This document shows, piece by piece, positions 7,280-60,046 of a DNA stretch of 64,000 bases. Origin of the DNA: Macrostomum lignano (Eukaryota); the NCBI GenBank assembly GCA_002269645.1, contig NIVC01002925.1, positions 1 to 64,000 of the forward strand, read 5' to 3'. How positions within the stretch are numbered: position 1 is the first letter of the stretch; the number at the start of each line of letters is the position of its first letter. The position numbers were made by a program, and so were the translations under genes. The notes below the pieces were generated by a model. It did no database searches. It was not told the origin of the DNA and worked only from the letters and a program-made list of their open reading frames with translations.

Positions 7280-10200
7280 TCAGGTCACGTAGACACCAGT
7301 AGCATCCTCCAGGTTGTAACCAGAGTTCTCATACTCCATGGCAGCAGAAGCGGCAGCAACCGGTGCTCCAGATCCAGGCGTCGTGGATCGATCAGACTAA
7401 AGCGCAAAGAGTTCGAACTTTAGCTGTCACAGTTTGAGTCGACTGTACAGATTGAGAAAACCAAAGCTTACCATTGGAATAGTTTGTTTTGTCCACGACT
7501 TATTTACTCTGAATTTGATGACTGAAAACTGAATTTAGCAGATGCAACACGGCAGTTTAGAGCACAGAGACGGAAAATATCATTTAGAGAGAGGGGTTAC
7601 TCACCGAGACCAAGACAAGCAAGAGCACACTTAGCAGAGCAGTTGCTGTTAGAAATCCGTACAAGAACTGTGAAATGTACATGCGTAAGGACTGCACATC
7701 AGGTTTGATGAGACCTTTGTGATTGCCGCAGCTGTAGCAAGCTGAGGCCCTGTGCTCAGCCTTGAACCGGATCTCCGGCGGCAGATTCTGCACTGCGCTG
7801 CACTCGATGAGGCCCACAAGCCACTCTGAGCTCAGCTTCCCTCCGATCGCCAGTGCCCACGTGCTGACCCAACCGTCGCCGCTCGAGCTCTGGAATTGAT
7901 GAAGCTCGCTGGTCAGCATGTCAGCGCGTAGTCACTCATAGTGTGAAAGTGCAAAATGCAAGCGACTCACAAATGACAGCTGCGTGAGGTTTCGCACTTC
8001 CAATCCGCCACCAACAGCGCTGCATCTGTGCTCGGGCACTGGTAGAGATGCAGACGATGCGAACTGTACCAATACGTCGGATGAGTTCTCGCAGGTTGGC
8101 AGATTGAGTACAGAAATTGATGCGCTTGATGGCGGGTCTGTGAGCATATTAAAAAGGGGAATGGAGTTCATCAAGTTCGATCAATAAGCTTTTCAGTTAT
8201 CTGATGGTTTTTATGATTTTTTCAAACCTATTTAGGCCGTGGATCGATACGTATTGAATACCGTACCGAAGATGAATAGAAGTTACTCCACATCATTTGA
8301 GTGCAAAAGTCTATGTGAATATTTTGAATATGTACACATCTCCATCGATCGTTCTACACTGGTTGGTGGATCCAATAATGGCGTCCGAGAGAGAAACCAC
8401 CCCTTTGACAATCCGTTTCCCTTTCCGGACTTAGTTGACATACCCTGTAAGGATAAAAGGCTAATAGAAAGGTGACCTGAAATGCAGCCTGATCTGCTGC
8501 CGTTGAAGGCTGCTCCTACTGCCACCAGTCAGCCTTAAGCTTGCACTCCTTGTGAGCATACACTGAGAATTTTGTCCCAATCTGTGTACGAGAGGAGTCC
8601 CAGTGCAACGCTGCTGTAACCAAATGCTAATCAATCGACTGTCATCCAGAGGCCGGAATCAACTTACAAAACACCGTTAAGAACTTTGAGCTCCGCGAGC
8701 TGCCCAGCTTGCACGTGTAGTTTCCATGGTGCCACAGCTGCGCCCTGTGAATGACGGCTTCAGCTTGTCCAACGCAGCTTCCGTTTGGAAGGCAGAGCTC
8801 CAACTTCGGTGAGAATTCGGTTCGACCGTTGCAGTCCAAAAGGCAGCGCACTGAGAATGCTGAGTGCTGCAGCACCGCCTTGGGGCTCTCGACTTCTGAA
8901 ATGCAATGATTTGAGACACTTTTGAGACGAACTTCAGTCATTTTGCATGTACTGCTAGCGCTTCAACTTAGCACACATACCAGGACTTGGACACAATTCA
9001 TGACAGCCGAGAAATCTTACTGATTTTCCCAGTCTGAAGCCTCAGGTCAGCAAAGCTCATGTGCCCGTCCGTGTCTTTAGACACGTTTCTTCGCAGGAGT
9101 AGACTTCGGACCTGCAGTTTAAATGCTCATCATTTCAGGTTGCTTTAAGAGACCATAAGACTCAAATCACTGCAGATATTTGAAATATTTTTACCTCAGC
9201 AACGCATTTCACGTGAAACATTTCTCCATCTGCGACGTCTCCCTGCTTTTTAGTCACGCCGCATGGCCTCCAAAGGTGCATCGAATTTTTAAACTGAAGG
9301 CCCATATTCCTGATGTTGCAGTTATCCCATGGATCAGGGAGCTGCTAGAGTTGGAGGTAAATATTTCAATGTCCTTTGCTCGATTATAATTATATATCAC
9401 ACCGTCTGAAAATAAGATGAGGAGTTACTTTTGATCTTACTGAAACATATTACTGTACGGTGGAATCTTCAGAGCAGGAGACTCAGTCTTTACAGAAGCC
9501 TAAGGCAGAAAGAAGAAGTAAGTTGTCTTTCACTCACCCTCTCTGCCCTTCAAAGTCACAGATCTGATGATCACTGGCTCATTCAGCTGCACGGCGAACC
9601 AGTGAAACCCGCCGTCTGCTTGGCTTCTGTTGGCGCTGTGGAAGAACTTGTAGCTGGTTTGCCTGTTGCTGATGATGGAGGCTTCGTCTGCCTGATTCCT
9701 GCTGTGGAAACACGTCGGACCATCGTCGAATGATGACTGCCACGAACTCAGAATGCGACTTCGCCGAATTGGGAACTCACCTGATGAAGGCGAGTTAATC
9801 GATTGAGCAACATTGAGCAACATTGAGCAACACTGAGCAACACTGAGCAACATTGAGCAACATTGAGCAACACTGAGCAACATTGAGCAACACTGAGCAA
9901 CACTGAGCAACACTGAGCAACACTGAGCAACACTGAGCAACACTGAGCAACATTGAGCAACATTGAGCAACATTGAGCAACATTGAGCAACACTGAGCAA
10001 CACTGAGCAACACTGAGCAACACTGAGCAACATTGAGCAACATTAAGCAACATTGAGCAACATTGAGAAACACTGAGCAACACTGAGCAACACTGAGCAA
10101 CATTGAGCAACACTGAGCAACACTGAGCAACACTGAGCAAAACTGAGCAACACTGAGCAACACTGAGCAACACAGAGCAACATTGAGCAACACTGAGCAA

Positions 10201-13200
10201 CATTGAGCAACATTGAGCAACATTGAGCAACATTGAGCAACATTGAGCAACATTGAGCAACATTGAGAAACACTGAGCAACACTAAGCAACACTGAGCAA
10301 CATTGAGCAACATTGAGCAACACTGAGCAACACTGAGCAACATTGAGCAACATTGAGCAACACTGAGCAACACTGAGCAACACTGAGCAACATTGAGCAA
10401 CACTGAGCAACATTGAGCAACACTGAGCAACACTGAGCAACACTGAGCAACATTGAGCAACACTGAGCAACATTGAGCAACACTGAGCAACACTGAGCAA
10501 CACTGAGCAACATTGAGCAACACTGAGCAACATTGAGCAACATTGAGCAACACTGAGCAACACTGAGCAACACTGAGCAACACTGAGCAACATTGAGCAA
10601 CATTAAGCAACATTGAGCAACATTGAGAAACACTGAGCAACACTGAGCAACACTGAGCAACATTGAGCAACACTGAGCAACACTGAGCAACATTGAGCAA
10701 CACTGAGCAACACTGAGCAACACTGAGCAACATTGAGCAACACTGAGCAACACTGAGCAACATTGAGCAACATTGAGCAACATTGAGCAACACTGAGCAA
10801 CACTGAGCAACATTGAGCAACATTGAGCAACACTGAGCAACATTGAGCAACACTGAGCAACACTGAGCAACATTGAGCAACACTGAGCAACAAGATTCTG
10901 AAGGCGGCCTACTTTCTACTCACAAAGAACAAAGACTTCTGTCTCAATCTCAATGACGTCATATCTGCAAGTATAAACTCCGGAGTGCATTGCCTGAGCT
11001 CTGTCCACTTGCAGACTTGAATTTGTCAGGCAGCTCCCATTCGGAGGGCACAGCCGGAGGTCGCCACCCAGTGGACGGTCTGAGCACTGCGATGCATTTC
11101 CGCAGTGCAGAGAGCAGCTCACGGTGAAGCTTGCGTTTTCGGAAACTTTCTGGCTCGGAGATGAAGCTGGGAATTTAATAAAGTTCAGATTCATAAATTT
11201 ATTCAAACTGAGCCTATTTCTATTCTATTGAAATGGAAGTTCTTGGTGGAAAAAATCTCCGTGTCCTATCGAATGCATCCTTGCCATCTTTAGTGAAAGC
11301 ATTTTAAGCTAATCAATGACTCACTCAGAACAGCGACTTGAAGTAATTTTGACAGATGTTTCACATGAGCAATGTGGATCTGCTGATTGTGTCGGCAGTC
11401 CCCACTTGGAGTGCACAGCTGCTTAAAAGTACGAGTAGAATATCGACCCTGAGATGGATTTTTCTGATCATGTTCATACTCATACGTCTTCATCCAAGCT
11501 CAAGTCGGAACTCCTACCAGAACTCTGCTCTCTTACTTGGTCACATTTTTTGCCTTGCATGCAGGAATAAATCGCCACACTCATTGCTTTCTACTTGTTG
11601 TAGCGAGCAACTCTAGCTGGTTGTTGCGAGTGCATAGTTAGCCACTCAAAAAGGTGGAGAAATAGAATGTGGCTGTGTCTGTATATTAACGAGTGTTGTC
11701 TGGTAGAACACAGATTACCAGTTCATTGAGTGCGCGTTGGGATGTGCTCGAGCAGAGGGAAGTGGATAGGCTGGGTGGGGGTCACGGAGTGCAAACTATA
11801 GGTGCCCGAACTGCCTGCTTAAGCATGCTACACTTGTCAATAGAGAAACTCTTACTTTTGTACAAGAATGAATCTGGAGACTGATCACTCACTGATCCAC
11901 AGAGAAACTGATCAGTTCTTGTTCAAAAACTGAGAGTGCAAGAAAGTGTAAAATGATCTGAGCAACTTACACAGCACAGCAACAAGTGACGGTATTTCCA
12001 GTGAGCCGAACCGACACCTGTAGAGACCGGAGTTCGATGGCCTGGCACTGGCAATGCTTATCGAGCTCTCGGCTGAGCAGCTGCCGTTCGGGTAGCACAG
12101 CTGAGGCTGGCGGAAATCAGCTGAGCCCGCATGATGCAGTACGCAGCCCAGGCTGAGACTGGAGCCCTCAGGGACCACTTGATGCGGCGTTGCAGCTGTA
12201 AAATAACAAACAGGAATGACTTCATTTGTCAGCGATGTACATGCAGACAGTGACTGACCATTCAGGTGCAAAGCTGCTACTCACAGAGAACAGCCACACT
12301 TGTGACAGCAACCACCTGTCCAATGCTGCAGTTGTAGTCTCCCGATTGTGTTGGAGTTGCCGCTGGGATCTGCAGACTCGTCTGTGCTGTGCAGGTCTTG
12401 TTGGGGCGACACAGCAGCAGCTGTCCGACAGCAGCGGAGTCTGCGCACTGAGCTGCATCGCCGCCTCCGCAGTGCAGAGTGCAGTTCAGCGTGAGGCTGG
12501 AGTTCTCAGCAACCACTTGGTTTGGTGATGACGCTGGAATGCGATACGAAATGGCATGATCAAGGTCTCCGTAATATAAGCTGTCTATATTTAATTTATA
12601 GGAACATTTTAACTGTAACAGGCAGGTTAATATTTAAGGAACTAATAAGAGCAAACTCAAACTACATCAGGCTCTCACATAGGATTGTGATTGAAGACGA
12701 TTGATTTATCGAGCCAATGCTGCAGGTGTAAACTCCAGAGTGCGATGGCTGAGCTCTGTCGACCTTCAGCTCGTTAGTGGCGGTGCAGCTGCCGTTTGGT
12801 GAGCACAGCTGCAGCCTGGCTGAGTGTGTGCTCAGGTGATCAGCTCCATCGCATTGCAGAGAGCAGCGAACTTCAAAGCTGGACTGCTCTGCCACCAGTT
12901 GAGGGCTTGAAATGTCTGAAAGCGAGATGTTTGGATCAATCAAGCACTGATAAATCTACCCTAGCAGTCTCGGTTGAAAAACTTACAACTGTACAGGCTA
13001 AATGGTAAAAGGGAACATGCTAGAATCTTCTTGTTTGAGTACTTCAGGCAAAGGGGAGTATCCCATCTCAGACAAAATTAGAGGGCTCAATAACTGTTTT
13101 TTTCGCGTAATCAAAGAAGCAAACATTTGAGAACAGCTGCTTTACTCAGCGGGAGCGTTTGAAGCCGCAGGTCCGCAAAGCTCATGAAGCCGTGGTCAGT

Positions 13201-13971: not shown

Positions 13972-14183
13972 AGGTGTCGATGACGAGGCTGTAATTCTTA
14001 ATCCAAGCCTCTCAGCCAAGTTGTGCGGGTCCAGAATTGTCAGCCGCGGCTGTTTTTGTGCAAAAGTTCGTCCTGTGCGAAGTTCCCCCAAGCAGTCGCA
14101 AGCCATCGCGCATAGACACTGCCGTGGGCCAGTTCCTTTTACCGGAAGCTGGAAATAAACTGTAAGGTAACTAGCTTGATTTA

Positions 14184-16105: not shown

Positions 16106-16378
16106 CTATCTCTTGTCTCCTTTTTTGTTGATCAACATCATGAGGGAAAAAGCAGGTTCTGAAGCGAACTCAGACTCTTGAGAGTGTCAGCAATGGAAGC
16201 TGAATCCATTCCAACTTTGCGCTCGTAGTGTCCGAATATATAATGTCCGAATTTGTCAGAATTTGTCCGAATTTGTCCCGATTTGTCCGAATTACTGACT
16301 GCCCGTAATTCTTTATTTTCGAGTGTTCCGAGTGCAGCAAAAATGTGACGATAAAAATCTCTGATAGACGCGAATGAG

Positions 16379-16867
16379 GCTAGACCCACACAGCCTACCC
16401 CACATAGCCTACCCCACACAGCCTACCCCACACAGCCTACCCCACACAGCCTACCCCACACAGCCTACCCCACACAGCCTACCCCACACAGCCTACCCCA
16501 CACAGCCTACCCCACACAGCCTACCCCACACAGCCTACCCCACACAGCCTACCCCACACAGCCTACCCCACACAGCCTACCCCACACAGCCTACCCCACA
16601 CAGCCTACCCCACACAGCCTACCCCACACAGCCTACCCCACACAGCCTACCCCACACAGCCTACCCCACACAGCCTACCCCACACAGCCTACCCCACACA
16701 GCCTACCCCACACAGCCTACCCCACACAGCCTACCCCACACAGCCTACCCCACACAGCCTACCCCACACAGCCTACCCCACACAGCCTACCCCACACAGC
16801 CTACCCCACACAGCCTACCCCACACAGCCTACCCCACACAGCCTACCCCACACAGCCTACCCCACAC
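16379..16867. repeat. 14-bp minisatellite (CAGCCTACCCCACA), about 35 units
   Basis: Read directly. Confidence 0.97.
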
Positions 16868-16885
16868 TGACTGCTGACTCCTGAT

Positions 16886-17288: not shown

Positions 17289-20170
17289 TCACAGAATATA
17301 GATTCCAGTCGCATTCTCCAGCTTGTACTCCGAATTCTCGTACTCAGATGCAGACTGCGGTGCCGCCGGTCCCCCTGCGGCCGGTCTCCCTGCCGTTGGA
17401 CGCCGCCGGGCACAGCCTGCAGAGCCGCAGGCGTCCGGCCTTGTCTGAAATTGGACGAGCGACTTCACAAGTGACGTCTTGATGAAATCGGACGAGCGAC
17501 TTCACAAGTGACGTCTTGATGAAATCGGACGAGCGACTTCACAAGTGACGTCTTGATGAAATCGGACGAGCGACTTCACAAGTGACGTCTTGATGAAATC
17601 GGACGAGCGACTTCACAAGTGACGTCTTGATGAAATCGGACGAGCGACTTCACAAGTGACGTCTTGATGAAATCGGACGAGCGACTTCACAAGTGACGTC
17701 TTGATGAAATCGGACGAGCGACTTCACAAGTGACGTCTTGATGAAATCGGACGAGCGACTTCACAAGTGACGTCTTGATGAAATCGGACGAGCGACTTCA
17801 CAAGTGACGTCTTGATGAAATCGGACGAGCGACTTCACAAGTGACGTCTTGATGAAATCGGACGAGCGACTTCACAAGTGACGTCTTGATGAAATCGGAC
17901 GAGCGACTTCACAAGTGACATCTTGATGAAATCGGACGAGCAACTTCACAAGTGACGTCTTGATGAAATCGGACGAGCAACTTCATAATTGACGTCTTGA
18001 TGAAATCGATGAGCAACAGAAATCCAAATTGATGGTTCTAACAACTCGCAGCATCTTCGAGAAGTTTCGTCAACTGCCTGCAACCTCCTCTGGTGCACAA
18101 TGTCAGCCACATTGTGAGTGTGTACTTACCCGGTTGAGCATTCGGAGTCTGATGGCTGCCGCGGAGGCTGCGGCCGCGATGAAGCCAAAACAAAATCCCA
18201 TAGCGATGTGGAGCACCAGTACTGTAGACACCAGACTTCCGCTGCAACAGCTCGTGAATGTTGAGTCTGTGTGGACAGCCTGAATACGGATGCCCTTCGG
18301 AAAACTCTGCACGGCAGAGCAAGTGATGATGGCGCTGCTGATATCCAGCCTCTTTACGTCATCAGTAGGAAATACCCATCTGCTGACGTAACCGTCCTTG
18401 CTCTGCAGTGCAGCGACATTTGCAGTTAATAGTGAGTCAGTCAGTCAGTCAGTCAGTCAGTCAGTCAGTCAGTCAGTCAGTCAGTCAGTCAGTCAGTCAG
18501 TCAGTCAGTCAGTCAGTCAGTCAGTCAGTCAGTCAGTCAGTCAGTCAGTCAGTCAGTCAGTCAGTCAGTCAGTCAGTCAGTACTGTCTCAATTTTGAGCA
18601 CGCACTACTGGTAGCAGTGTGAGATTCCACAGGTTGACTCCAACTCTGGCGTTGCATCTGTGCTCAGACACGGGCTGCGATGAGGAAGACGTGAACTGCA
18701 CGGTCACATGGGTCAAACTCTGGCAGCTCTGAGAGTTCAGCACTGAGACCGCCACTCTCGATGGAGGGTCTGCGGATTCGGATTCATTCGGATTTTCCGT
18801 TGTTTGAAAAGCGGAGGAAAATAATTTCGAGAAAAAGTATTGAAGAGCGCCTCACAATACACGGTGAGGTTGGTGGTCTTCCTGACCGTGCCTATCTTGC
18901 AGGTGTAACTTCCTGAGTCCTCTGACTGGATTCTGGGGATGTGTACCGCGTTGGAAGCTGTGCAGCTGCCACGAGGAGAGCAGAGTTTTAATCTTTTTGT
19001 CTGCGCGTCGACTTTCGTACCTTTGCAGTGCAGTGAGCAGCTGACTGAGACATTGTCGTTTCTAACCGTCTCTTCAGGGGAAGACACTTCTGCAGACGAG
19101 GGGAAGACACTTCGCAAAGTTAGTAATTAATATAATGCTGACGGCAATCTCTGTGCCTTGGGGGTTGCGCCTTATGGGTGTGAATCGTGCCAATTTTCGT
19201 GAACATTTTCGTGATCAGAATTTTTGCTATTTGCTATCAACTATGTCCAGGTGAGCATGTTCTGTCCAATCCGCAGCACTTACTCAGCTCCATTGTCTGC
19301 AGGCTGAGGTCTGCGAAGCTCATGAAGTCGTGGGTCATGGAAGGATCAGCAGTTCTGACGTCACGCCTCAACAGTAAGTACCGGACCTGGATTTGAAAAA
19401 TAACTTGTTCAAAAAAGAAGCATTAGAACACTGCAGTTTATTGATGCCAATGGTTGAGAACACTGCAGTTTATTGATGCCAATGGTTGAGACACTTACAT
19501 CCTGTGTGCAGTTCACCGTCAGTGTCTCACCAGCCCTGATGCTTCTTTGCTGGCCGTCCGTGACGCCGCACAGCCTCCAGTACCACAACGACTCTCTGAA
19601 CTGGCTGCTCATGCTCCTGGAGCTGCAGTGATCTCCCGAGAGCATCACTCTGCTGCTTCCTGCTGTCCAGACTTCGATCCCCCTGGTTCTCGAGTAAGTG
19701 AACGATTTCCCGTCTAGAATGAGTTGAGAAAATCAAGTCGAACGAGCTCTGTGCGCGCATGAGCTGCATCACAGTGCCACTCACATTCTCTGCCCTTCAG
19801 GGTCACTGAGCTGATGAGCAGTGGCTCACTCAGCTGCACTGCAAACCAGTGAAACCCTCCGTCTGCTGCCGAGCCGTCCCCGCTGTGAAAAAACCTGTAG
19901 CTGCTGCTGGGCTTGCTGAGCACAGCGGCTTCCTCCGATGCAGTTCTGTTGTGGAAGCAAGTTGGACCGTTGCCGAAGGACGACTGCCACGAGTTGAGAA
20001 CACGAGTGCGGCGGATTTCTATTTTGCCTGCGAGTAACAGTGATGAAGCTGTCGATTTGAGAATTTATTGCCTTGGTTGAAACCCCCGAACTCAACTCAA
20101 ACTCACAGTCTTGGATAGCAGCGGTGTGCGCAACAGCCAGAAGCAATAGAAATTTGGAAACAGCTCGCAT
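17289..20170 (-). CDS. Receptor R6: SP - FTP - Ig x1 - membrane-proximal domain - TM - class II (YEN) tail
   Basis: Exons: SP 20170-20107 (MRAVSKFLLLLAVAHTAAIQD); lectin 20027-19785, 19713-19499, 19386-19284; Ig 19089-18856; 18769-18606; TM exon 18402-18130 (VLVLHIAMGFCFGFIAAAASAAAIRLRMLNR); last exon 17444-17289 ending SEYENSEYKLENATGIYIL*. Phases are consistent; a middle tail exon (perhaps starting 18089) is unresolved. Confidence 0.85.
17454..18010. repeat. 37-bp head-to-tail minisatellite, about 15 units, in the R6 tail intron
   Basis: Unit GACGAGCGACTTCACAAGTGACGTCTTGATGAAATCG; no spacers. Confidence 0.95.
18433..18580. repeat. (TCAG)n microsatellite, intronic in R6
   Basis: Read directly. 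Confidence 0.97.
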
Positions 20171-21121: not shown

Positions 21122-23530
21122 TCAACGAGCCGCAGAAAAAATTAAACCAAGCCAAAAAAGCCAGGTCCAAGCAATAGCTCTAAGACTCGCACCTGAGCTC
21201 GGGATCTGCTTCAGCCGTCGCAACTCGCTCCGCTCGAGAACTGCGCCAGAGACCGGGCTCAGCGCGAGCGACGCCTGCTCAAGCAACCGGGCCGCCGTTG
21301 ACTCATTGAGGCAGGCCCTGCGCAGATCTTCCGGCTGCGCCTTGGCCCGGCCGAAGTAGCGCAGCAGAAACAGCAGCATGTGGCGGGGATGCGTCAGGCA
21401 GCGCGACAGCGGGTCGCTCAGCAGCTGCCAGGACCCCGGCATATGGTGAGCTCGAAACTGAAAGTCGTGCCTCAGCGCTGCCAGAGTGGCCGTTTTGAGC
21501 AGGGTCATGACGATCGGGTTGCTGGAGGCACCGCGGTTGATGGTGCCGACCGCCGCGCTGCTGTCGACGTAGCAGGCCACCTTGCCGCCGGCCAGCTGCT
21601 CCTGGAACAGAATGATGGCGAGCAGCGGCAGTACCGTCTCCTTGGCGTTGATGTGCTCGCTCAGGAAGATGCCACCGGCGTCACTGCAGAAGTCGACGAG
21701 GCGGAACTCGCGCTGGCCATCAGAGGTGCTCAGGATCATGCCACCGGCACTGACGCAGGCGTCCGTCTCGACCGCTGCCAGCACTCGTGCACGCCGCCAC
21801 AGCTTGTCGGTCGGGAACACTGGGATTGCATGCTGCCAGAACTGCAACTGGGCCAGTACCTCGCCGCGCACCGGTACTCGATGATGCTGCTCAGGAATAG
21901 CGATGGTTATCTCCAGGAGCGCGCGAAGCAGGGCCTTTGCAGGTTTGGCCACTTTGCAGAACCAGTTAAGTTTGCCGACTAGGTGCTGAAGGCGACGTTT
22001 TTGCAGGCTCTTCGAGTTGGCGCAGTCCTGGAGAAGTTCTCGAAGGCCGTCCATCTTCTCGGCGGGCAGTGACAGCAGGCCAGTCAATGTGTCGATCTGC
22101 ACACCCAGGAAAGTGATCGAAGTGGCTGGGCTCTGCGTCTTGGCCCAGTTGATCTCAAAGCCGAGGCGCTGCAGGGTGACCAGCAGAAAATTGTGCAGCT
22201 GCAGGCAGACCTCGTAGTCCCGGGCAGCTATGCAGAAATCGTCGAGGTATGCGATGACGACGAATTTGGACAGATGCGAGAATTGCCTGTACATAAAGCG
22301 CTTGACAGCTTGCGTTAGGCGGTGGAAAATGTTGACTGATGCCGCCGCACCGAATGGGAGTCGCGTGTCAACCAGATAAGTGGGCTGACCGTCCAGCTCG
22401 AACGTCCACCGGAGCCCCGTCGCCTTATAGCAGTCTGGGTGCACCTGAACACTTCGGTAGGCGTGGCGTAGGTCGACCTTGCTGATGAACCAGCCTGGTG
22501 CCAGCTGCCTGGTGAGATCCTCGACATTGGCAAACTTCATCTTCTGGCGGGGCTTGTACAGATCGTTGAGGCTGTTGCCCTGTGGCGCGGACGCGTCGTG
22601 AATCAGGCGGATGGCGCCGTCTGCCTTCGGGACGGCGCCCAGTGGGCTGATGATGGTCGGCCTGGCGATGCCCAAGTCAGTTGCGCTGATGTACCGGCCA
22701 GCCACGACCTCCTCTCTGATCCGCAGCTCAACGGCATTCCGATTTGCCTCGCAGCAGGCGGATGCATGATTTTCGAGCTGGGATTCGCTGGTCGGAGCCG
22801 CGTCGGTGATGCGAAAGCCATCGCGAATTCCCGCGATCAGAAACTCCGCGTCCGAGTCTCCGAGCAGGACTGGTGTCCAAGCAGCAGTTAACAGCGGCCA
22901 ACGTTTTCGGAGTGCAGCCACCGGGCCAGCAACAGGGCCGGCAGCAGCGCCGGCAGCGGGGCCGGCGGCAGGGCCGGCGGCAGGGCCGGCGGCTGGGCCG
23001 GCAGCAGGGCCGGCAGCAGGGCCGGCAGCAGGGCCGGCAGCAGGACCGGCAGCAGGGCTGGCAGCAGGACCGGCAGCAGGGCCGGCAGCAGGGCCGGCAG
23101 CAGGGCCGGCAGCAGGACCGGCAGCAGGGCCGGCAGCAGGACCGGCGGCAGGGCCGGCAGCAGGGCCGGCAGCAGGACCGGCAGCAGGAACGGCAGCAGG
23201 ACCGGCGGCAGGGCCGGCAGCAGGACCGGCAGCAGGGCCGGCAGCAGGACCGGCAGCAGGGCCGGCAGCAGGACCGGCGGCAGGGCGAGTGGCAGGGCGA
23301 GTGGCATGGCGAGCGGCAGTGCGAGCGGCAGGGCGAGCGGCAGGGCGAGCGGCAGGGCGAGTGGCAGGTCGAGCGGCAGGGCGAGCGGCAAGGCGAGTGG
23401 CAGGGCGAGCGGCAGGGCCAGTGGCAGTGCGAGCAGCTGTCTCGCATGGAATTAAAATTTTGGACTGTCTATCAGACGCCGTCCGCTTAGGGCTAAAACT
23501 GGTGCCGCCGCGACCCGCCTCTTTGCTCAG
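21122..23530 (-). CDS. Pol frame: Ala/Gly/Pro repeat linker + reverse transcriptase + RNase H (DIRS type)
   Basis: [47 protein letters not shown] (RT); VETDAC, HINAKE, YVDSS (RNase H). The frame stays open upstream of the GTG at 22921 to 23638, with no ATG, GTG or TTG in that stretch. Confidence 0.88.
22921..23430. repeat. 12-bp GC-rich repeat (GCAGGGCCGGCA type) between gag and RT
   Basis: Read directly; encodes AAGP-like units in the pol frame. Confidence 0.95.
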
Positions 23531-45554: not shown

Positions 45555-46008
<454 letters not shown>

Positions 46009-46407
46009 CTGTGTCACTTTCCGATAAGCTTCCGATCTATTTCCAGGAACAGGCCCCTCAAAACAGCCCAATCATCAGTTCTAAGTAAACATCCTGCAAG
46101 AAATCAAGCCATGTGTCCAGGGCTAAACTGTCCATTTAAAGCCACTTCTGAGTTAAAAGCAGAAAATTAATGCTTTATTGGCGCACATGTTTAGCGAAAC
46201 TTGATTGAAAAAGTTTGATTAAAAATCTATAAGTTCAAAGTAACATTAACAAAAAGTCAATGATATTCACGTTTTGCTGATATCATATTGTTTTTCGTAT
46301 ATGTTAAATTAATTAGAAGCAAGAAGGCAGGTGTGGAGGACCATCAGGTATTTTGGTGATTCGTCACTTAAATCCTTCAACTGTGAGCTTTTGAGTACAC
46401 ACCGAAC

Positions 46408-49400
46408 TTATGAGTCTTCAATCTCTCCATCAGCCAGAATCTCAATAAACTCGGTGCATTCGCTGGCAGAGTCCTGCAAATCGGCTGTGGTGGCCTCTGC
46501 CTGACCTCCAGGTGGGATTATTGTTAAGTAGCTGCACTCTGGCAGCTCCTCCGTGCAACAGCAGGCCTGCAAATGTTTCAGTGCGGTGCTTGTGTAGGTC
46601 CGGGTAGAAACACCCACCGTCCCACAACCAGCGTTAAGGCAATTCTGCCCATTCCACTGACTAATGAGCACCTACTTTAATACTGTATGCAGGCACGCCC
46701 TCACACGCTCACACAGGGTGTACAGCGGCCTGACTTTCTAATCGTCAGGCATGTACACTCTCTGTGCCGGGGGGGGGTTGGCCCTCATGGCTGTGAATCG
46801 AGCCTGAGCCCCTGGCCAATTTTGAGCACAAGCCCTAAATGAATGCAGCCGCGCACCAAGCAAGGGGTCGTGTCGCGAGGGTCGGACGCGTTTGTTGAAT
46901 CTGCCGAGCATGAACTTTTGTTGTTTGATTATTTTTTGCCTTAGGTATACTTGCTGTACAAGCAAACCCGAGCGTAGAGAGCAATGAGAAATTAAAAAGT
47001 TGAAAAGGAACTGAGAGATTCGGACGAACTCTGGACAGTGGACATTGTCGGATCGAAGTCATCGGCATAACCAATGTCGACTCCAAACACACTATTGACT
47101 CTATGTGACTGGCCTCATCAAGAACGGAGGTGCTATTTTTGGACGGAGTAGCAAACTTCGCCGTGGACATTGTGCAGAACCGATTTGGCATGTTCGCGTA
47201 CTCGGATGCTGTAACAAAGACAACCCGCTAAATCAAAGTCACGCGTACGACAGCAAACACTGACCGCGCTTCAATTCGTTCAAGTCCTAAGCCGTGATAC
47301 GAAGAACGCTGGCTTCCTTCTCACTCATGACGACTTTGTCAAATATGCTATGAACGGTGATTCAACCGCGCCTGAGAAACCTGAGCATCATCATCCTCTT
47401 GAGTTGAGTTGAGGGGAGTCAAACTCCGCCCAGGAGTGCTTGAGTACAGGCAGTGCTGCACTCATGGGAGTACGCTGGCGCTGCAGTTGAAGCTGTGGAA
47501 CAGATCGGAAGTTCATGAAGTGCGCATGATGACCATATCCAACGCAGCAAGTGTCATCAAAGCTGGGGGTGGGGGCTAGCCCAAGCTGCGGGTGGCCCAG
47601 TCAACAACTGGACTAATCTACTACCGGACGTGACGCCTGGAATGCCCACGAGGCCAGTTCCAACTTGACTATTGACACTCGGAATGCCGACGAGAGCAGT
47701 TCCAACTTGACTAATGACACTCGGAATGCCAACGAGAGCAGTTCCAACTTGACTAATGACACTCGGAATGCCGACGAGAGCAGTTCCAACTTGACTAATG
47801 ACACTCGGAATGCCGACGAGAGCAGTTCCAACTTGACTAATGACACTCGGAATGCCGACGAGAGCAGTTCCAACTTGACTAATGACACTCGTAATGCCGA
47901 CGAGAGCAGTTCCAACTTGACTAATGACACTCGGAATGCCGACGAGAGCAGTTCCAACTTGACTAATGACACTCGGAATGCCGACGAGAGCAGTTCCAAC
48001 TTGACTAATGACACTCGGAATGCCGACGAGAGCAGTTCCAACTTGACTAATGACACTCGGAATGCCGACGAGAGCAGTTCCAACTTGACTAATGACACTC
48101 GGAATGCCGACGAGAGCAGTTCCAACTTGACTAATGACACTCGGAATGCCGACGAGAGCAGTTCCAACTTGACTAATGACACTCGGAATGCCGACGAGAG
48201 CAGTTCCTACTTGACTAATGACACTCGGAATGCCGACGAGAGCAGTTCCAACTTGACTAATGACACTCGGAATGCCGACGAGAGCAGTTCCAACTTGACT
48301 AATGACACTCGGAATGCCGACGAGAGCAGTTCCAACTTGACTAATGACACTCGGAATGCCGACGAGAGCAGTTCCAACTTGATTATTGACACTCGGAATG
48401 CCGACGAGAGCAGTTCCAACTTGACTAATGACACTCGGAATGCCGACGAGAGCAGTTCCAACTTGAAAATCAAAATCAAATCAAACAACAAAAGTTCAAG
48501 CTTCATAGATCCAACAGCGTTTACTGCTGAGCTTCTCTGCCCCCAATGAAGTCCGGTTACTTGTTTATATCTTTCGGAACTCATTTTAGATATAAGGTAT
48601 CAGTTACTGAAAGTAGAGATAGAAATTTAGCAGAATTTTTATGTAAAACAAAAAATATCCATAAAAATTTTGTTCACACTGTGTAACAGTTCGTGTAACT
48701 CACAAACAGGAATAATTCAAAATTTGAGTTCAATAGTTTTTTAAATGACTGGTTGCAAATATTTCTTAAAAAGAAAATAAAACGCATGGCACTCACAGCA
48801 TCTGTCGGCTGCGCATCGTACGGGATCATCATGGAGTTGACCTGCACAATTGAGTAGATCTTCAGCCTGGCAGATGGCGAACTTCTGGAACGAGACCGCC
48901 TGGAAATCCGCTGCAACATGAATAGCATTGAGCAGTGAATCATGCAGTTAAGGGAAGAATAAAGGTCGAAGTGTCCAACAGTTTCTCACCACGGCCGCAA
49001 CCGCAACCAACACAGCAGACAGGGCGACTGCACCGCCAATTGTGGCAGCGGCAATCGCAATGGACAGGGAACTCAAAATCTCCGGTTCTGTGCAGATGGC
49101 TTCCACAGACTCCTGACTCAATACCCGAAAGCCGAGCTGCTGCGGGAGCTGCTGCTGAGCGATGCACTTTATGGAGATGACACCGCCGCTTTGCAGGCTC
49201 GAGTCCGGGACCCACTGGCTGATGGTTCCGTTCTCGCTAGAGCTCTGCAAGCCCGCACCCGTCACAGTCAATTGAGCAAATAAAGGTTAATTTTGGATTG
49301 ACGAATTTAAGACCAACCTGGTGAATGAGTGTGAGATTCTGCATTTCAATTCCAGCAGCTTCTGCGCCGCATCTGTGCTCGGAGATTGGCTCAGACTCTG

Positions 49401-51836
49401 TTGATGTAAACTGCACGATGACATCTGACAGGTTCTGACAGCTGTTGAAATTCAGCACTGACACTGACACTCTCGATGGGGGGTCTGAAAAATATTAAAT
49501 CTGAGTGCATGTTGAGCCACCTGTGATATCCTGTCTGTAATAAGAAACTTTTGAAGAGAATTTAAAGAGCTCACACAGCACGGTGACCGAAGTTCGAGAC
49601 TCCACAGAGCCCAGTCTGCAGGTGTAGTTTCCAGAGTGCAGAGGCTGCGCCACAGCAACGGCCATCCTGTGACTGCCTGTGCAGCTGCCGTTCAGCAAGC
49701 AGAGATGCAGTCCGCTTGAGTTTGAGCACAGATCTGAGCCGTTGCAGTGCAGCGAGCAGCTCATAGTGAGCTTGGAGCCCTTCATCACAACTTGACGCGG
49801 GGAGACTGCTGCAAAAGTCAGTAAGTTACCGAATTAGAATTCAAAATAAAAATCGTCATATTTATCAATAACGAATAAAAGATTGACAAGATATGCTTTT
49901 CTCAGGATTACTTGACACCATCATTAAATTAAAGGCATCGATTTGGATCTGACAGAAATGTGTCAGTAGAAAATGAAAGTGACATGCCTGACAGCCCATC
50001 CCAAGTCACACAGTCACGCACTCACAGCACAGAGACAGGCTTGCCAGCTTATGCCAAGTCTGCACTCACACAGCACAGAGACATGCTTGCCAGCTTATGC
50101 CAAGTCTGCACTCACACAGCACAGAGACATGCTTGCCAGCTTATGCCAAGTCTGCACTCACACAGCACAGAGACATGCTTGCCAGCCCATGCCAAGTCTG
50201 CACTCACACAGCACAGAGACAGGCTTGCCAGCCCATGCCAAGTCTGCACTCACACAGCACAGAGACAGGCTTGCCAGCCCATGCCAAGTCTGCACTCACA
50301 CAGCACAGAGACAGGCTTGCCAGCCCATGCCAAGTCTGCACTCACACAGCACAGAGACATGCTTGCCAGCCCATGCCAAGTCTGCACTCACACAGCACAG
50401 AGACAGGCTTGCCAGCCCATGCCAAGTCTGCACTCACACAGCACAGAGACAGGCTTGCCAGCCCATGCCAAGTCTGCACTCACACAGCACAGAGACAGGC
50501 TTGCCAGCTTATGCCAAGTCTGCACTCACACAGCACAGAGACAGGCTTGCCAGCCCATGCCAAGTCTGCACTCACACAGCACAGAGACTGCAGTGCGCAT
50601 CTCCACAGAGCCCAGTCTGCAGGTGTAGCTTCCAGCGTGTTGAGGCTGCGCTCTGGGAACCCGCAGCTCCCGTGATGCATTGCAGCTGCCGTTCGGAAAG
50701 CAGAGCTGCATCAGAGCTGCTAAGCCAGCATCTGACTGGTCTGTGCAGCCCAATGAGCAATTCACTGTGAAGCTGGAGTTCTCCGCAACGAGTTGAGCTT
50801 CTGAGATCCCTAAAACGTAAAGTTGTTCACAGGTAGCAGCAGTTCAGGTACGATATTTCTGACATTTGAGCAGCTGCAATCACCACAGTCGTGACTTACT
50901 CAGCTGCAACTTTTGAAGCCGGAGGTCAGCGAAACTCATGTAGTCAAGAGAGCTCGAGACGTCCGCGTTTGTTATGCTTCTTCTAAGAAGAATGTACCTC
51001 ACCTGAGAATTTGTTATTGAAAAACAACTTTCTAACAACTCTGCAGCAGGTTGTTTATTCTACTTAATAAGATTATTTATTATCCATCATTATAGAGTTT
51101 GCTAGTAAATATATACAGGCAGTTTAAATTTGAAATGTATTCACCTCAGCCATGCAATCCACTGTGAAATTTTCACCAGCGGAAATTCTTGGGCCGCCCT
51201 CAGTCAGCCCGCACCGTCTCCAGAGATGCAGTGATGCATTGAACTGGCTGCTCATGCTCCTTGAACTGCAGTGATCTCCTGAGAACAGCTGGCTGCTGCT
51301 GTCTGATGTCCAGATCACAATGCCTCTGGCTCTTTTAAAGACTTTCGATGCACCATCTGGAATGCGAGAGCACCGTGAGCAGAGACAGCAGACTTGGAGC
51401 ACGCATTTGAGTGAGTGACTCACCCTCTCTGCCCTTCACAGTCACAGATCTGATGAGCACTGGCTCATTCAGCTGCACTGCAAACCAGTGAAACCCGCCG
51501 TCTGCTGAGCTCTGGCCAGCGCTGTGGAAGAACCGGTAGCTAAAGGTTTTGTTTTTGAGCACGGATTCCTCATCAGTGTGGCTTCTGTTGTAAAAGCAAG
51601 TTTGGCCGTCGCCAAAAGACGACTGCCAGGAGCTCAGCACGCGGCTCCTGCGAATGGGGAACTCGCCTGCAATAATGAGCACAGATTGAGCACTTACATT
51701 CTTTTTATTCATGCTGACATTCATTGCTCATGCAGAACTCACAGTTTGCTCCAACTTCAGCATGCGCGGCTGTCTGGACCAGCAGCAGCAGCAGCAGCAG
51801 CAGCAACAGGTCTGCCATTGCGAACCAGACCTCCAT
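46408..51836 (-). CDS. Receptor R3: SP - FTP - Ig x2 - membrane-proximal domain - TM - class I tail
   Basis: Exons: SP 51836-51743; lectin 51666-51424, 51356-51145, 51002-50900; Ig 50809-50576, 49808-49575; 49484-49318; TM exon 49244-48990 (ILSSLSIAIAAATIGGAVALSAVLVAVAAV); tail 48910-48797 and 46566-46408 (LPECSYLTII...SECTEFIEILADGEIEDS*). All phases are consistent. Confidence 0.85.
46690..46830 (-). mobile_element. Partial SINE (GAGAGTGTACATGCCTGACGATTAGAAAGTC core); similar pieces at about 2140-2200, 31120-31210 and 58085-58230
   Basis: Core sequence match read by eye. Confidence 0.6.
47655..48465. repeat. 42-bp minisatellite, about 19 units, in the R3 tail intron
   Basis: Unit TTGACTAATGACACTCGGAATGCCGACGAGAGCAGTTCCAAC. 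Confidence 0.95.
50017..50588. repeat. 46-bp minisatellite, about 12 units, containing the R3 Ig1 exon end and its 5' splice site
   Basis: Minus-strand unit GTCTCTGTGCTGT|GTGAGTGCAGACTTGGCATGGGCTGGCAAGCCT. Confidence 0.93.
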
Positions 51837-52099
51837 TGCTTGGCATGTTTGAATACGAGCCGTAGATTATATAAACTTTGTCAGTTTGAAATGTTTAACT
51901 TCGGGAAATATGTTTCTGTTTAAAACCCAAATTCGCAAGTGATATTTAAAATTATAGTTTTGTATTTTATAAATAAGCCAGCAACATCACCCCCATCAAC
52001 ACTTGGTTTATCTTATCTTATGTGTTAAATATAGCCTGTTTGTGTGTCATTTCAAATGTTGAATTTAAGAAAAGTTTCGTAAATAATTCGTAATATTTG

Positions 52100-52423
<324 letters not shown>

Positions 52424-52635
52424 AGACGCATTAATAGCCGTTGCTTCTTTGGAGTTTAAACTCTCTTGCATTTTATTTACAGCGCCATTTAAATACTTCA
52501 ATTCCTGTAATTCACTCATGCATACGACTGCTTTAACTCTGAAATTCTTACAATATGAACTGGCAATGGCTAAATTTACATATTGAATTCTATCTAATAA
52601 TAAAATATTGATTATAGTTTGAGCAGTTGATCATG

Positions 52636-56782
<4,147 letters not shown>

Positions 56783-57153
56783 GACGACTTTGCCAAGGCA
56801 CCGGCAATGATATGCTGTGTATTCTGCAGGCTGTGTATCTGTCAGCTGTAATTTATTTCACACTTTGCCCTCCCCACTGTTACAGCTCTAATCAAGATGC
56901 AAAATGAGCGGACAGGTTGGCATTGTGCAATGTTGCGCGTTCACCTTTATGTTTATTCAGAGTGTCGGAGCTTTCAATTTTAACTAATGATGCTGTTTGA
57001 CAATTTTTAATTTCTGACTTAATTCGGTATTAATGATGTTTTCTACTAATATTCATATCTAAAATGCTGAAATTATATTCAGTAAGTTTATCCGCGTTGC
57101 CAGCATTTAAACATTTGCTGATTCAATTCACAATAAATAAAATTCGCACCTGG

Positions 57154-57625
57154 GTGACTGACTGACTGACTGTGACTGTGACTGACTGTGACTGTGACTG
57201 TGACTGTGACTGTGACTGTGACTGTGACTGTGACTGTGACTGTGACTGTGACTGTGACTGTGACTGATTGACTGTGACTGTGACTGACTGTGACTGTGAC
57301 TGTGACTGACTGTGACTGTGACTATGACTGTGACTGTGATTATGACTGTGACTGTGACTATGACTGTGACTGTGACTGTGACTGACTGTGACTGTGACTG
57401 TGACTGTGACTGTGACTGACTGTGACTGTGACTGTGACTGACTGTGACTATGACTGACTGACTGACTGACTGACTGACTGACTGACTGACTGACTGACTG
57501 ACTGACTGACTGACTGACTGACTGACTGACTGACTGACTGACTGACTGACTGACTGACTGACTGACTGACTGACTGACTGACTGACTGACTGACTGACTG
57601 ACTGACTGACTGACTGACTGACTGA
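57154..57625. repeat. (TGACTG)n / (TGAC)n compound microsatellite
   Basis: Read directly. Confidence 0.97.
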
Positions 57626-57840
57626 TTGAAGCGACGGTGCTCGGCAATGGACATCGAGAGGTCAGCGTTTATTTTGAAATTCAAAGATTTATTTGTGCTG
57701 AATACGAGTATTAACCATTGAAACTGAACAATTGCTTGAGTTCATTAAAACAAATTTCAGCTCGCACTCAAGAACAGGTGCCCTGTACACAGATGCAGTG
57801 CATGCAAGGTGAAGAATCTGATGATCATTGAAGCAGCTCG

Positions 57841-60046
57841 CTAGTTGGCATCGGCCACAATTTCCAAATAGACGGTGCAGTCGCTTGCGGTGTCCGAATT
57901 CCTGTCCGAGTTGTCGGCGGGCTCGGCGTTGGGATTCACCGACAGGTAGCTGCACTCGGGCTCGCAGCTGCGGGCGGTGACGCGCGGTCGCAGCGTCGGC
58001 TCCGTCTGAAATCGGTGGAGCCGGCTCGGATTTCATCATCAATTCATCATTGCTCATCAGTTGTTGAGCATTCGAAGTTTCAATATTCGCAGGAGCAGGC
58101 ACTCACACACACGCTCACGCGGGGTGTACAGCGGCCCTGACTGTAATCATCAGGCATGTACAGTCTGTGCATGCATGAAAACCCAATGGCCTATTTTTGA
58201 GCACAATGCCCAAATGAATGCGGGGAATCGTGTACCACTGAGCTTCCCTGCTCCTGCATGAGCCATCACAGCAGTATTCTGTACAGGGGTCAGATGCCTC
58301 TCACCTTGCGCACTGCCTTAGCAACGCCAGCCGGATTATCTGGCACATTGCTCAGCTTTGCTTCGGGACTTGAGGACTGCAACTGTCTGCTCTTCAGTTT
58401 CAGCTTCAGCTGGAATTCGAAATTCGGTTATTCTCTTACCTGTCAAAAAAAAATCAAATTGACCAGTTACTGACCAGAGCGACGCCGCAGATTAGGGCGG
58501 TTAAAACAAATACGAGGGCCGACACAGTTGCTGAGAAGGTTGCGTTGCTGGCTGAGTTCGGCGATGAGGCTGCAGGTGCGAGAGAGAGTGAATGAGAGGT
58601 CACTGAGACTGTTGTGAATGAATGAGAGGTCACTGAGACTGTTGTGAGTGAATGAGATATCACTAAGACTGTTGTGAATGAATGGGAGGTCACCGAGACT
58701 GTTGTGAATGAATGAGAGGTCACTGAGACTGTTGTGAATGGCTGAGAAATCACTAAGACTGTTGTGAATGAATGAGATATCACTGAGACTGTTGTGAGTG
58801 AATGAGAGGTCACTGAGACTGTTGTGTGAGTGAATGAGAGGTCACTAAGACTGTTGTGAATGAATGGGAGGTCACTGAGACTGTTGTGAATGAATGGGAG
58901 GTCACTGAGACTGTTGTGAATGAATGGGAGGTCATTGAGACTGTTGTGAGTGAATGAGAGGTCACTGAGACTGTTGTGAGTGAATGAGAAATCACTGAGA
59001 CTGTTGTGAATGAATGAGAGGTCACTGAGACTGTTGTGAATGACTGAGAAATCACTAAGACTGTTGTGAATGACTGGGAAATCACTGAGACTGTTGTGAA
59101 TGACTGAGAGATTTTATATTAAAACCAAGAGAGAATAATTTCAGTCATTAGTTTACCTGGCGGGTTTTTAGGTCGCCTAACCTGCAGTCTGAGATCCGCA
59201 AAGCTCATGACATCATCGTCATCTGTGTCCGGTTCCTTGCTTGACACGTCCTTCCTTAGCAGCAGGTGATGCGCTGGCTTGGATGTCTGAAAGCAGTTCA
59301 GCTACTGTAGTTGCAGTTTGGCAGCAATTTAGCCTGCATTATTGACAGAACCCACCCCATTCTCGCAGGACACAGTGAGAAGTTCACCACGAGTGATGCT
59401 TTCCAGAGAGCTGTTAATCACACCGCAAAGTGTCCATTTTGGCAGTGAATCATTGAACTGCCCGCTCATGCTTCTTGAAGTGCAGTGCTCATCGCCGGAG
59501 AACACCCGCCTGCTCCAGCTCGATGTCCAAATTTCAATGTCGATCACTCGGTTGTAGGTGTATTGAACTCCGTCTGAAGTGAAATTTTCCCAATTTAGGA
59601 GTATCAGCAAATTGCCGAGTATGAAAGACAGTGACTGACTCACCCTCTCTGCCCTTCACAGTCACAGAGCTGATCAGCACTGGCTCATTCAGCTGCACTG
59701 CGAACCAGTGAAACCCGCCGTCAGCTTGGCTCTTGCCTTTGCTGTGAAAGAACCGGTAGCTTTTCTGCTTGTCACTGACAACTGAGGCCTCCTCTGTCTG
59801 GCTTCTGTTGAAGAAGCAGGTCTGGCCGTCGCCAAAAGACGACTGCCAGGTGCTCAGCACGCGGCTCCTTCGAATAGGGAACTCGCCTGCAATGATACCA
59901 CGGTATCTACGCTCGTACTCGTATCAGGAGATTTCGATGACTCATTGTCAGACCAAGAAAGTCAGTTACTCACTCGTGTCAGAATTGTCAGCGGCCGATC
60001 CTTGCAAGATAAAAATGAAGATCAGTCCTGCTAATTGGAGCTTCAT
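57841..60046 (-). CDS. Receptor R1: SP - FTP - Ser/Thr/His-rich repeat stalk - TM - class I tail (no Ig)
   Basis: Exons: SP 60046-59974 (MKLQLAGLIFIFILQGSAADNSDT); lectin 59886-59644, 59573-59356, 59286-59157; stalk+TM 59103-58475 (629 nt, open frame, ends SALVFVLTALICGVAL); tail 58409-58305 (LKLKLKSRQ...) and 58005-57841 (EPECSYLSV...DCTVYLEIVADAN*). Confidence 0.85.
58580..59105. repeat. 30-bp coding minisatellite forming the R1 stalk
   Basis: Unit GACTGTTGTGAATGAATGAGAGGTCACTGA type, about 17 units. Confidence 0.93.

Follow-up and report, generated by a model that had tools for sequence, protein, structure and literature searches.

Receptors of the PD-1, BTLA, PECAM-1, CD33-type Siglec and SLAM types are type I membrane proteins with immunoglobulin (Ig)-like ectodomains and short disordered tails that are encoded in tandem multigene clusters, and those that combine an ITIM (immunoreceptor tyrosine-based inhibitory motif) with an ITSM (immunoreceptor tyrosine-based switch motif) carry two tyrosine-centred tail motifs about 25 residues apart. 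We analysed a window of 64,000 nucleotides from the flatworm Macrostomum lignano (contig NIVC01002925.1, positions 1–64,000), in which a tandem array of at least eight minus-strand genes (1467–59923), delineated by an exon-type scan, homologues and predicted folds, encodes a receptor family with these same features. Seven of the genes, designated R1–R7, end in a small exon encoding a cytoplasmic tail, which is of class I in R1–R5 (about 25.6–60 kb) and of class II in R6–R7 (about 7.3–20.2 kb). The tyrosine-to-tyrosine distance in class I is 24–27 residues (16 in R5), compared with 25 for PD-1 (Y223/Y248; PMC7078208), and a distal TxYxx[VI] is present in R1, R4 and the distant paralogue P0029. 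As in Siglecs, a putative glycan-binding N-terminal domain is followed by Ig repeats. The flatworm proteins differ from ITIM/ITSM receptors in that they show no detectable sequence homology to them (a profile search gave M. lignano proteins only), have a cysteine at position −2 of the proximal motif and a phenylalanine in place of the distal tyrosine in two of five tails, and begin with a galactose-binding-domain-like sandwich rather than a V-set Ig domain. M. lignano, a flatworm, is not known to have a lymphoid or natural killer system.

Three further groups of known systems invite comparison. Sites of the YxN type occur in CD28 (YMNM), DAP10 (YINM), FAK (YENV, at Y925) and LAT, and the Grb2 SH2 domain recognizes such sites chiefly by their asparagine at +2. 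This asparagine also stands in the class II tails (YENS) and in P0029 (YINS), but the class II YENS lies inside a conserved block of 19 residues with two further tyrosines and an end 2–3 residues after the last of them, and lacks YxxM; docking at these sites is putative. Snail FREPs, amphioxus VCBPs, Hydractinia Alr and Botryllus fester/uncle fester, lineage-specific recognition families of invertebrates in which immunoglobulin-superfamily and lectin-type domains are combined or which lie in polymorphic arrays, are, like the present family, taxon-restricted, tandemly expanded mixtures of Ig and carbohydrate-binding-type domains with one exon per domain. Alr and fester are also membrane proteins with tyrosine motifs, whereas FREPs and VCBPs are secreted, and the flatworm domain set (an F5/8-C/F-lectin-like domain, six-Cys Ig domains and an Ig-like stalk) and tail motifs differ from those of all these families. 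Finally, the predicted N-terminal fold and a weak Pfam F5_F8_type_C match recall F-type lectins, F5/8 type C (discoidin) domains and CBM32, but with a sub-threshold score and 12–16% identity; sugar binding by the modelled domain is putative. Clustered immunoglobulin-superfamily (IgSF) receptors with tyrosine-motif tails are a known class, to which the family adds a new domain architecture.

Tail classes and domain architecture

Seven minus-strand genes, related by tandem duplication, end in the small exons described here, which are genuine 3'-terminal coding exons; the tails that they encode carry short linear motifs of two classes, each specific to its subfamily and under purifying selection. 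A first-pass annotation, made from the letters of the window, had proposed two such classes; all 12 of the tail peptides that it quoted are encoded on the minus strand where it had placed them, and the division into classes holds, each being specific to its subfamily, located after a predicted transmembrane helix (hence cytoplasmic) and predicted to be disordered, with motifs under purifying selection. Class I tails share two blocks, [ED]CSY[LMY]x[VI]xP and, near the C-terminus, [DE]CT[VE][YF]x[EK]I[VL][AG]D[GA][DNE], separated by 24–27 residues, or by 16 in R5. In four of the five tails, the aromatic position of the second block is eight residues away from the C-terminus. The invariant tyrosine motif of the first block, [ED]CSYxx[VI]xP, had been left uninterpreted in the first-pass annotation. 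The class II consensus, [DE]YENS[EG]Y[KN]LE[ND]A[TA]G[IV]Y[IV]x, ends at the C-terminal carboxyl group.

The class I blocks are far more frequent in the window than expected by chance. CSY..[VIL].P occurs five times, compared with 0.23 in shuffled sequence, and [YF]..[IM][VL][AG]D[GA] six times (the five tails and a chance plus-strand match at 33484–33507), compared with 0.03. When the class I genes are aligned as DNA, only two conserved islands emerge, which coincide with the motif blocks, while introns, linker and 3' untranslated region do not align. Pooled proportions of nonsynonymous and synonymous differences (pN and pS; Nei–Gojobori) are 0.25 and 0.69 in the motif blocks and 0.63 and 0.70 in the remainder of the tail exons; the motif columns were picked after the fact, so that the high pS is the informative figure. 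Since the motif residues persist although synonymous sites are nearly saturated, the pattern indicates purifying selection on the blocks at the protein level, and recent gene conversion is ruled out as the source of motif identity. Over their last 19 codons, R6 and R7 differ at six synonymous positions and keep all three tyrosines.

The proteins are type I membrane receptors with a signal peptide, a lectin-like N-terminal domain, Ig-like domains, a stalk, a transmembrane helix and a tail. The galactose-binding-domain-like (F5/8-C/F-lectin-like) domain is followed by zero to five or more six-Cys Ig-like domains, each on an exon of its own, a membrane-proximal Ig-like stalk, a single transmembrane helix and a short disordered cytoplasmic tail. 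The AlphaFold2 model of R1 (P0004), built from the family alignment, has a confident β-sandwich at residues 23–215, a transmembrane helix at 232–262 and a tail with predicted local distance difference test (pLDDT) values below 40. Foldseek matches to the N-terminal domain include an F5/8 type C domain (3nng), fucolectin (3cqo), CBM32 and lectinolysin, with 7blg and 4gwj also listed, at TM-scores of about 0.67–0.70 (normalized by target length) and 12–16% identity. The fold was assigned by structure prediction because the Pfam matches are sub-threshold (PF00754, F5_F8_type_C, 17.3 bits against a cut-off of 28.2; PF22633, 13.9 against 27.8). In the model of P0002, the Ig exon (pLDDT 90–97) and the stalk form two tandem Ig-like domains, followed by a transmembrane helix and a disordered tail, and this pair matches the two-Ig ectodomains of butyrophilin, PD-L1 and MAdCAM-1 (Foldseek E of about 1e-6). 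The Ig exons carry the conserved pattern C...C...C..C...YxC...C and score 20.8–21.4 bits with Pfam Ig_2 (cut-off 27), which is sub-threshold at the sequence level; judged by predicted fold, they belong to the immunoglobulin superfamily.

Terminal exons and their splicing

Each of the seven tail exons is a short open stretch with a polypyrimidine-AG acceptor directly before it and a stop codon at its end, which is included in the tail-exon coordinates given below. Donors of the transmembrane exons (GT) and acceptors of the tail exons (AG) are in phase 0 in 7/7 genes. Public proteins mapped back to the window give canonical GT-AG introns in R1 and R6, and public models join the transmembrane exon to the tail in R1 (NCBI BOX15_Mlig012084g1, P0004), R3 (UniProt A0A1I8HDT4, P0031) and R6 (UniProt A0A1I8H7P4/A0A1I8JJS2, P0003/P0006). 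A genome-guided RNA-seq transcriptome underlies the GenBank BOX15 models, and repeat-overlapping transcripts were removed from it before submission (PMC5730564); the exon connectivity of R1 is therefore RNA-supported, and the absence of its satellite-rich neighbours from GenBank is explicable by that removal. The joins in R2, R4, R5 and R7 are putative, with phase-matched splice sites as their basis. The earlier proposal that hidden tail exons are spliced to transmembrane exons thus stands for R1, R3 and R6 as to the splicing, and for all seven as to small terminal exons, but the R1, R3 and R6 tails were already contained in public models. For the others the annotation is extended: the R2 models lack tail exons, and R4, R5 and R7 are unannotated. 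An AATAAA signal lies 15–264 nt after the stop in six of the seven genes (R1 +148, R2 +159, R3 +229, R4 +15, R5 +175, R6 +264), compared with an expectation of about 0.28 per site (P roughly 1e-3, with a distance threshold chosen post hoc).

All exons described here lie on the minus strand. The R1 tail exon (57841–58005; acceptor tttcag/ACG, phase 0) encodes the class I tail TEPTLRPRVTARSCEPECSYLSVNPNAEPADNSDRNSDTASDCTVYLEIVADAN and is present in P0004 (RNA-seq-derived), P0005 and P0007. It is preceded by a juxtamembrane exon of 105 nt (58305–58409; AG/GTGAGA, phase 0-0) encoding LKLKLKSRQLQSSSPEAKLSNVPDNPAGVAKAVRK, which is 100% identical to residues 254–288 of P0004, and by a transmembrane exon (58475–58569; donor CTG/GTCAGT, phase 0) that maps to P0004 and ends in ATVSALVFVLTALICGVAL. 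The R1 acceptor differs between the public contig and the window (K/TLRPRV against K/TEPTLRPRV); both versions are in frame and each corresponds to a database protein. A minisatellite in the R1 intron (58454–59085, minus strand), between the lectin and transmembrane exons, maintains an open frame of Ser/Thr-rich repeats (SHSFTTVSVT...), which the public model of R1, P0004, does not include; the minisatellite may serve as an alternative mucin-like stalk exon or be purely intronic.

In R2, the tail exon (52636–52770; acceptor tggcag/GCG, phase 0) encodes AGPRVPDSDCSYLTVRPPAAKPATEHPDDRSDCTEFLKIVADGD, a class I tail with phenylalanine in the second motif, and is identical in the public contig NIVC01002544.1. 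Upstream of it are a putative juxtamembrane exon of 102 nt (52856–52957; tttcag acceptor, weak GTTTGT donor, phase 0-0) encoding TSKRDTESSVEAVELKLVVAESSGMQHNDGSEAE and a stalk/transmembrane exon (53628–53882; donor CTG/GTGAGT, phase 0) ending in FMQYVAASLIGAFVTALVASAAVGLAIRL, which corresponds to the C-terminus of P0001 with 90% identity. The R3 tail exon (46408–46566; acceptor ttgcag/GCC, phase 0) likewise encodes a class I tail with phenylalanine, ACCCTEELPECSYLTIIPPGGQAEATTADLQDSASECTEFIEILADGEIEDS, which is contained in P0031 with a single D/H difference in the linker. The R3 juxtamembrane exon of 114 nt (48797–48910), encoding RISRRSRSRSSPSARLKIYSIVQVNSMMIPYDAQPTDA, was predicted blind from splice rules and was then matched exactly by P0031, in which it is identically joined between transmembrane exon and tail; the stalk/transmembrane exon (48990–49244; AG acceptor, GTG/GTGAGA donor, phase 0) forms the N-terminal part of P0031.

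The R4 tail exon (32577–32726; acceptor tttcag/ACG, phase 0) encodes the class I tail TRHYFDYEEPECSYMLVMPAAQAAQARRVRTESDDSECTVYEEIVGDGD. A putative juxtamembrane exon of 108 nt (33213–33320; tttcag acceptor, GTGAGT donor, phase 0-0) encodes CKSGTTEPSAITLSLKSLPSVSQLVPDPPETVEAPP, in which VPDPP resembles VPDNP of the R1 juxtamembrane exon, and a single exon in which the stalk halves are fused carries stalk and transmembrane helix (33407–33870; donor TTG/GTCAGT, phase 0), ending in FFLAILSMGAAASVIALVIIIVAAL; its 5' boundary (tag/AT) was placed from paralogues. R5 has a short form of the class I tail, TVSNLREASSECSYYTVVPAKGAPTAADGYREMVADGD (25612–25728; acceptor ttccag/ACA, phase 0), and a stalk/transmembrane exon (25959–26222; AG acceptor, GCT/GTGAGT donor, phase 0) ending in LWIICICALLILATLLMFAAIA. 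Only a 230-nt intron (25729–25958) separates the two, and no internal exon candidate was found in it.

Of the class II genes, R6 has the tail exon 17289–17444 (acceptor tttcag/ACA, phase 0), which encodes TRPDACGSAGCARRRPTAGRPAAGGPAAPQSASEYENSEYKLENATGIYIL and is present in the UniProt models P0003 and P0006, and a stalk/transmembrane exon (18130–18402; donor CGG/GTAAGT, phase 0) that corresponds to residues 277–374 of P0003 and ends in AAAIRLRMLNR. The R7 tail exon (7280–7396; acceptor ctttag/TCT, phase 0) encodes SDRSTTPGSGAPVAAASAAMEYENSGYNLEDATGVYVT, and the stalk/transmembrane exon (7605–7889; AG acceptor, TCG/GTGAGT donor, phase 0) ends in FLYGFLTATALLSVLLLVLVS; a weak candidate juxtamembrane exon of 57 nt was placed between them by splice rules (7472–7528). 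The first-pass annotation had inserted a frameshift (+1 nt) in the R7 tail, which is rejected because the tail reads ...AAMEYENSGYNLEDATGVYVT to its stop codon in one intact frame.

The array and its distribution

The window is eukaryotic in character, with about 48% GC, abundant micro- and minisatellites and one reverse-transcriptase open reading frame (ORF), and is 96–99.8% identical to the public contig NIVC01002544.1 (assembly Mlig_3_7), in whose overlapping 16 kb R1 (BOX15_Mlig012084g1) is the sole receptor gene annotated. The minus-strand scan distinguished LEC1, LEC2, Ig-like, stalk, transmembrane and tail exons, and the array contains about 12 LEC1 exons and at least 25 six-Cys Ig-like exons in addition to those of the last three types. 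An eighth family gene (1467–3639, minus strand) is truncated by the start of the window, with its transmembrane and tail exons beyond it; LEC1 (3304–3639), LEC2 (2575–2733) and two Ig exons (1784–2059 and 1467–1742) are present, and its lectin part corresponds to the database protein P0011. LEC1–LEC2 units with no transmembrane or tail exon between them also occur on the minus strand, three upstream of R4 (39745–44598) and two upstream of R5 (28578–30379), and represent either multi-lectin ectodomain genes or tail-less copies (secreted or pseudogene).

A segmental duplication of 2.6 kb relates 8661–11288 to 40816–42732 with 91–94% identity over Ig, LEC1, LEC2 and Ig exons, and both copies share the same 30-nt intronic minisatellite. 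Its two copies lie upstream of tails of different classes, those of R7 (class II) and R4 (class I), and their LEC and Ig exons are near-identical. The LEC2 exon of the R7 copy (9257–9424) is frame-disrupted relative to the database protein P0013.

Long micro- and minisatellites are dense in the introns and spacers of the array (6796–7260, 9530–10893, 16374–16877, 41676–42344, 45441–46170, 47613–48584, 49960–50770, 52018–52519, 53871–54719 and 57123–57647), and their lengths differ between the window and NIVC01002544.1. GenBank annotation probably skipped most of the array genes because of them. A retroelement lies between R5 and R6 (21122–24573, minus strand), with an ORF of 599 residues containing RVT_1 (Pfam, E = 2.9e-17), a second ORF of 348 residues upstream and a GC-rich minisatellite (22728–23645) between the two. 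An ORF of 203 residues on the plus strand inside the R4 region (35219–35830), with a signal-peptide-like start and weak PAN/apple matches (E = 0.03–0.08), may be an unrelated gene for a small secreted protein or a chance ORF. Outside the window, about 9 kb upstream of R1 (NIVC01002544.1, 1–1137), a neighbouring gene encodes a protein of 1091 residues with Pkinase/PK_Tyr_Ser-Thr domains.

The family is uncharacterized and is found almost only in M. lignano. A concatenated exon model retrieved homologues from this species only, and 1.84 billion representatives, searched exhaustively with a profile, yielded 23 proteins, of which all named ones are from M. lignano and one is a metagenome fragment. 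A metagenome scan with the LEC1 alignment gave 193 pattern matches, none of which was confirmed. With the class I tails alone, the profile search gave five word-sharing candidates, none of which scored, and with the C-terminal halves it returned P0031 only, as transmembrane and low-complexity words swamped the candidate list. Annotation of the family proteins does not go beyond 'hypothetical' or 'Ig-like domain-containing'. In the literature, we found no mention of Mlig012084, Mlig026357, Mlig021334 or Mlig014586 and no paper on ITIM/ITSM receptors in flatworms.

Distant paralogues (about 25–28% identity) likewise have tyrosine-bearing tails. That of P0029 (∼27% identity) reads ...EFYINSKLFR followed by SRRLNGDVTEYLDIVSIGVVRQPK and carries both YINS and TEYLDIV, the latter encoded by a terminal micro-exon of its own that follows a canonical intron. 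In the distant paralogue BOX15_Mlig026357g1 (L002, 11944–12128), YINS ends one exon and TEYLDIV stands on a separate terminal exon of 75 nt; its sister model P0018 lacks the TEYLDIV exon, an indication that 3' ends in the family may be alternative or incomplete. The tails of P0014 (MEYEQP...ETYADIYCDE) and P0026 (SVYVDD...SVYVSD) are further variants.

Candidate roles of the tail motifs

The explanation that we favour, at somewhat better than even probability, is that these are receptor tails for SH2 docking. Binding of a ligand by the lectin-like and Ig-like ectodomain would lead to phosphorylation of tail tyrosines, at which SH2-domain proteins would then dock. Class I would correspond to the tandem of a proximal ITIM-like and a distal ITSM motif in PD-1, PECAM-1 and Siglecs, recruiting SHP-type phosphatases or Src-type kinases, and class II to YxN sites recruiting Grb2/Drk-type adaptors; R2 and R3, whose distal motif has phenylalanine, would be variants with one tyrosine only. 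Sequence does not tell which of the classes inhibits and which activates. The opposition of inhibitory and activating receptors drawn in the first-pass annotation finds no specific support, and no feature identifies class II as activating: no ITAM (immunoreceptor tyrosine-based activation motif) is present and no transmembrane segment contains a Lys or Arg (0/7), that of R6 having one His.

The consensus matches quoted earlier are literally correct (TxYxxI in R1 and R4, YEEI in R4, YxN in R6 and R7), but the designation of class I as ITSM tails applies to only two of the five. With the ITSM defined as TxYxx[V/I] and the ITIM as [S/I/V/L]xYxx[I/V/L] (PMC8631942), an ITSM is present in R1 (TVYLEI), R4 (TVYEEI), P0005 and the distant P0029 (TEYLDI) and absent from R2 (TEFLKI), R3 (TEFIEI) and R5 (DGYREM, a YxxM). 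YEEI, the optimal ligand of the Src SH2 domain, occurs in R4 only, R1 having YLEI and the other tails diverging from it. A canonical ITIM reading of the class I proximal motif is ruled out by the cysteine at −2, and the sole literal ITIM match, SYYTVV in R5, arises by chance from the offset within a YY pair. YxN is found as YEN in R6, R7 and P0002 and as YIN in P0029 and P0018, in tails predicted to be disordered. No ITAM (Yxx[L/I]-x6-8-Yxx[L/I]) was found in 12 cytoplasmic domains, which rules out an ITAM reading of class II, and a PDZ-ligand reading of the C-termini was discarded in view of their inconsistent ends (...YIL, ...YVT, ...YID and ...DGD).

A number of observations weigh against docking by conserved terminal tails. 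At the level of the exons, the public R2 models P0001 and P0022 end at the transmembrane exon without a tail, a tail exon of R4, R5 or R7 was found in no public model, R7 has no AATAAA within 700 nt of its stop and lies downstream of the disrupted LEC2 exon, and neither the profile search nor the metagenome scan yielded orthologues from other species. At the level of the motifs, the window shows no excess of generic ITSM, ITIM and YxN patterns over shuffled sequence, so that a generic match alone carries little weight. The distal tyrosine is phenylalanine in R2 and R3, and this state is itself conserved, co-varying with a Val-to-Glu change (TVY to TEF); the combination fits a function other than phosphotyrosine equally well. 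The R5 distal motif lacks the TxY context, the proximal motif [ED]CSYxx[VI]xP has Cys at −2 in 5/5 class I tails, and SH2 docking accounts neither for the invariant cysteine that both class I motifs contain nor for the constant distance to the C-terminus; these two features and the TVY-to-TEF change maintained in R2 and R3 may indicate another partner.

The main rival, which we judge improbable, is that the motifs are trafficking signals controlling surface level or recycling, with the proximal SYxx[VI] as a YxxΦ endocytosis signal for AP-2 μ2 and the distal acidic/Ser cluster and [YF]xxI[VL] as an acidic-cluster/dileucine-like sorting signal. YxxΦ (Yxx[LIMFV]) matches the proximal motif of 5/5 class I tails, stretches rich in Ser and Asp/Glu precede the distal motif, and in R2 and R3 that motif is conserved without its tyrosine and gains a Glu at −4, which creates the relaxed [DE]xxx[LI][LIV] (EFLKIV and EFIEIL); among the tails tested, this pattern matches R2, R3 and P0029, and the strict [DE]xxxL[LI] matches none. 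The distal motif keeps a short, constant distance from the C-terminus, an arrangement also seen in known C-terminal acidic-cluster-dileucine signals. Such signals, however, would not call for the wider conservation of the proximal block (E-C-S before the tyrosine and Pro at +5), the Φ position of which can be Val, a weak Φ residue for μ2; R1, R4 and R5 have no acidic residue at −4, and class II tails match neither YxxΦ nor a dileucine, yet conserve three tyrosines.

We regard as unlikely that the motifs serve a different cytoplasmic partner or are modified in some other way (palmitoylation of or metal binding by cysteine, recognition of the acidic C-terminus, or a lineage-specific adaptor), the ITSM/YxN likeness being coincidental. 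This would account for the invariant cysteine that precedes the aromatic position of each class I motif, for a C-terminal [AG]D[GA][DN] exactly eight residues after Y/F in four of five tails and for the substitution of Phe for Tyr, and short consensus matches are common by chance. Against it, tyrosine is the most consistently kept residue across both classes and distant paralogues, and the asparagine at +2 of the first class II tyrosine is kept in R6, R7, P0002 and P0029. That the R2, R4, R5 and R7 tails are unexpressed relics in decaying duplicates, alike through ancestry or gene conversion, is very improbable: the missing public models, the R7 defects and an array full of satellites with a retroelement would suit such decay, but all four tails have open frames, canonical phase-matched splice sites and stops at the homologous place, their motif residues persist despite near-saturated synonymous sites, unlike the outcome of gene conversion or neutral decay, and the GenBank removal of repeat-overlapping transcripts (PMC5730564) can explain the missing models.

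A broader extension of SH2 docking, which we put forward as doubtful, is a flatworm-specific paired-receptor system that arose independently of the vertebrate leukocyte receptor complex (LRC), Siglec and SLAM clusters, in which lectin/Ig cassettes would be combined with an ITIM-like plus ITSM tail (class I) or a Grb2-type YxN tail (class II), tuned by Tyr-to-Phe exchange, for glycan-based recognition of non-self, symbionts or mates/sperm. Cassettes seem to be partly shared between the classes, as in the block of 91–94% identity upstream of both R7 and R4, and this sharing hints at paired receptors.

According to a 2025 review, work on the IgSF of platyhelminths has not passed the stage of identification (PMC11999971), and transgenesis is established in M. 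lignano, a model flatworm (PMC5730564). Almost nothing is known of the immune-type and recognition receptors of flatworms, and this lineage-restricted lectin/Ig family is a concrete candidate in a testable species. If its tails recruit SH2 proteins, receptor signalling of the ITIM/ITSM and YxN styles would have arisen independently outside the deuterostomes.

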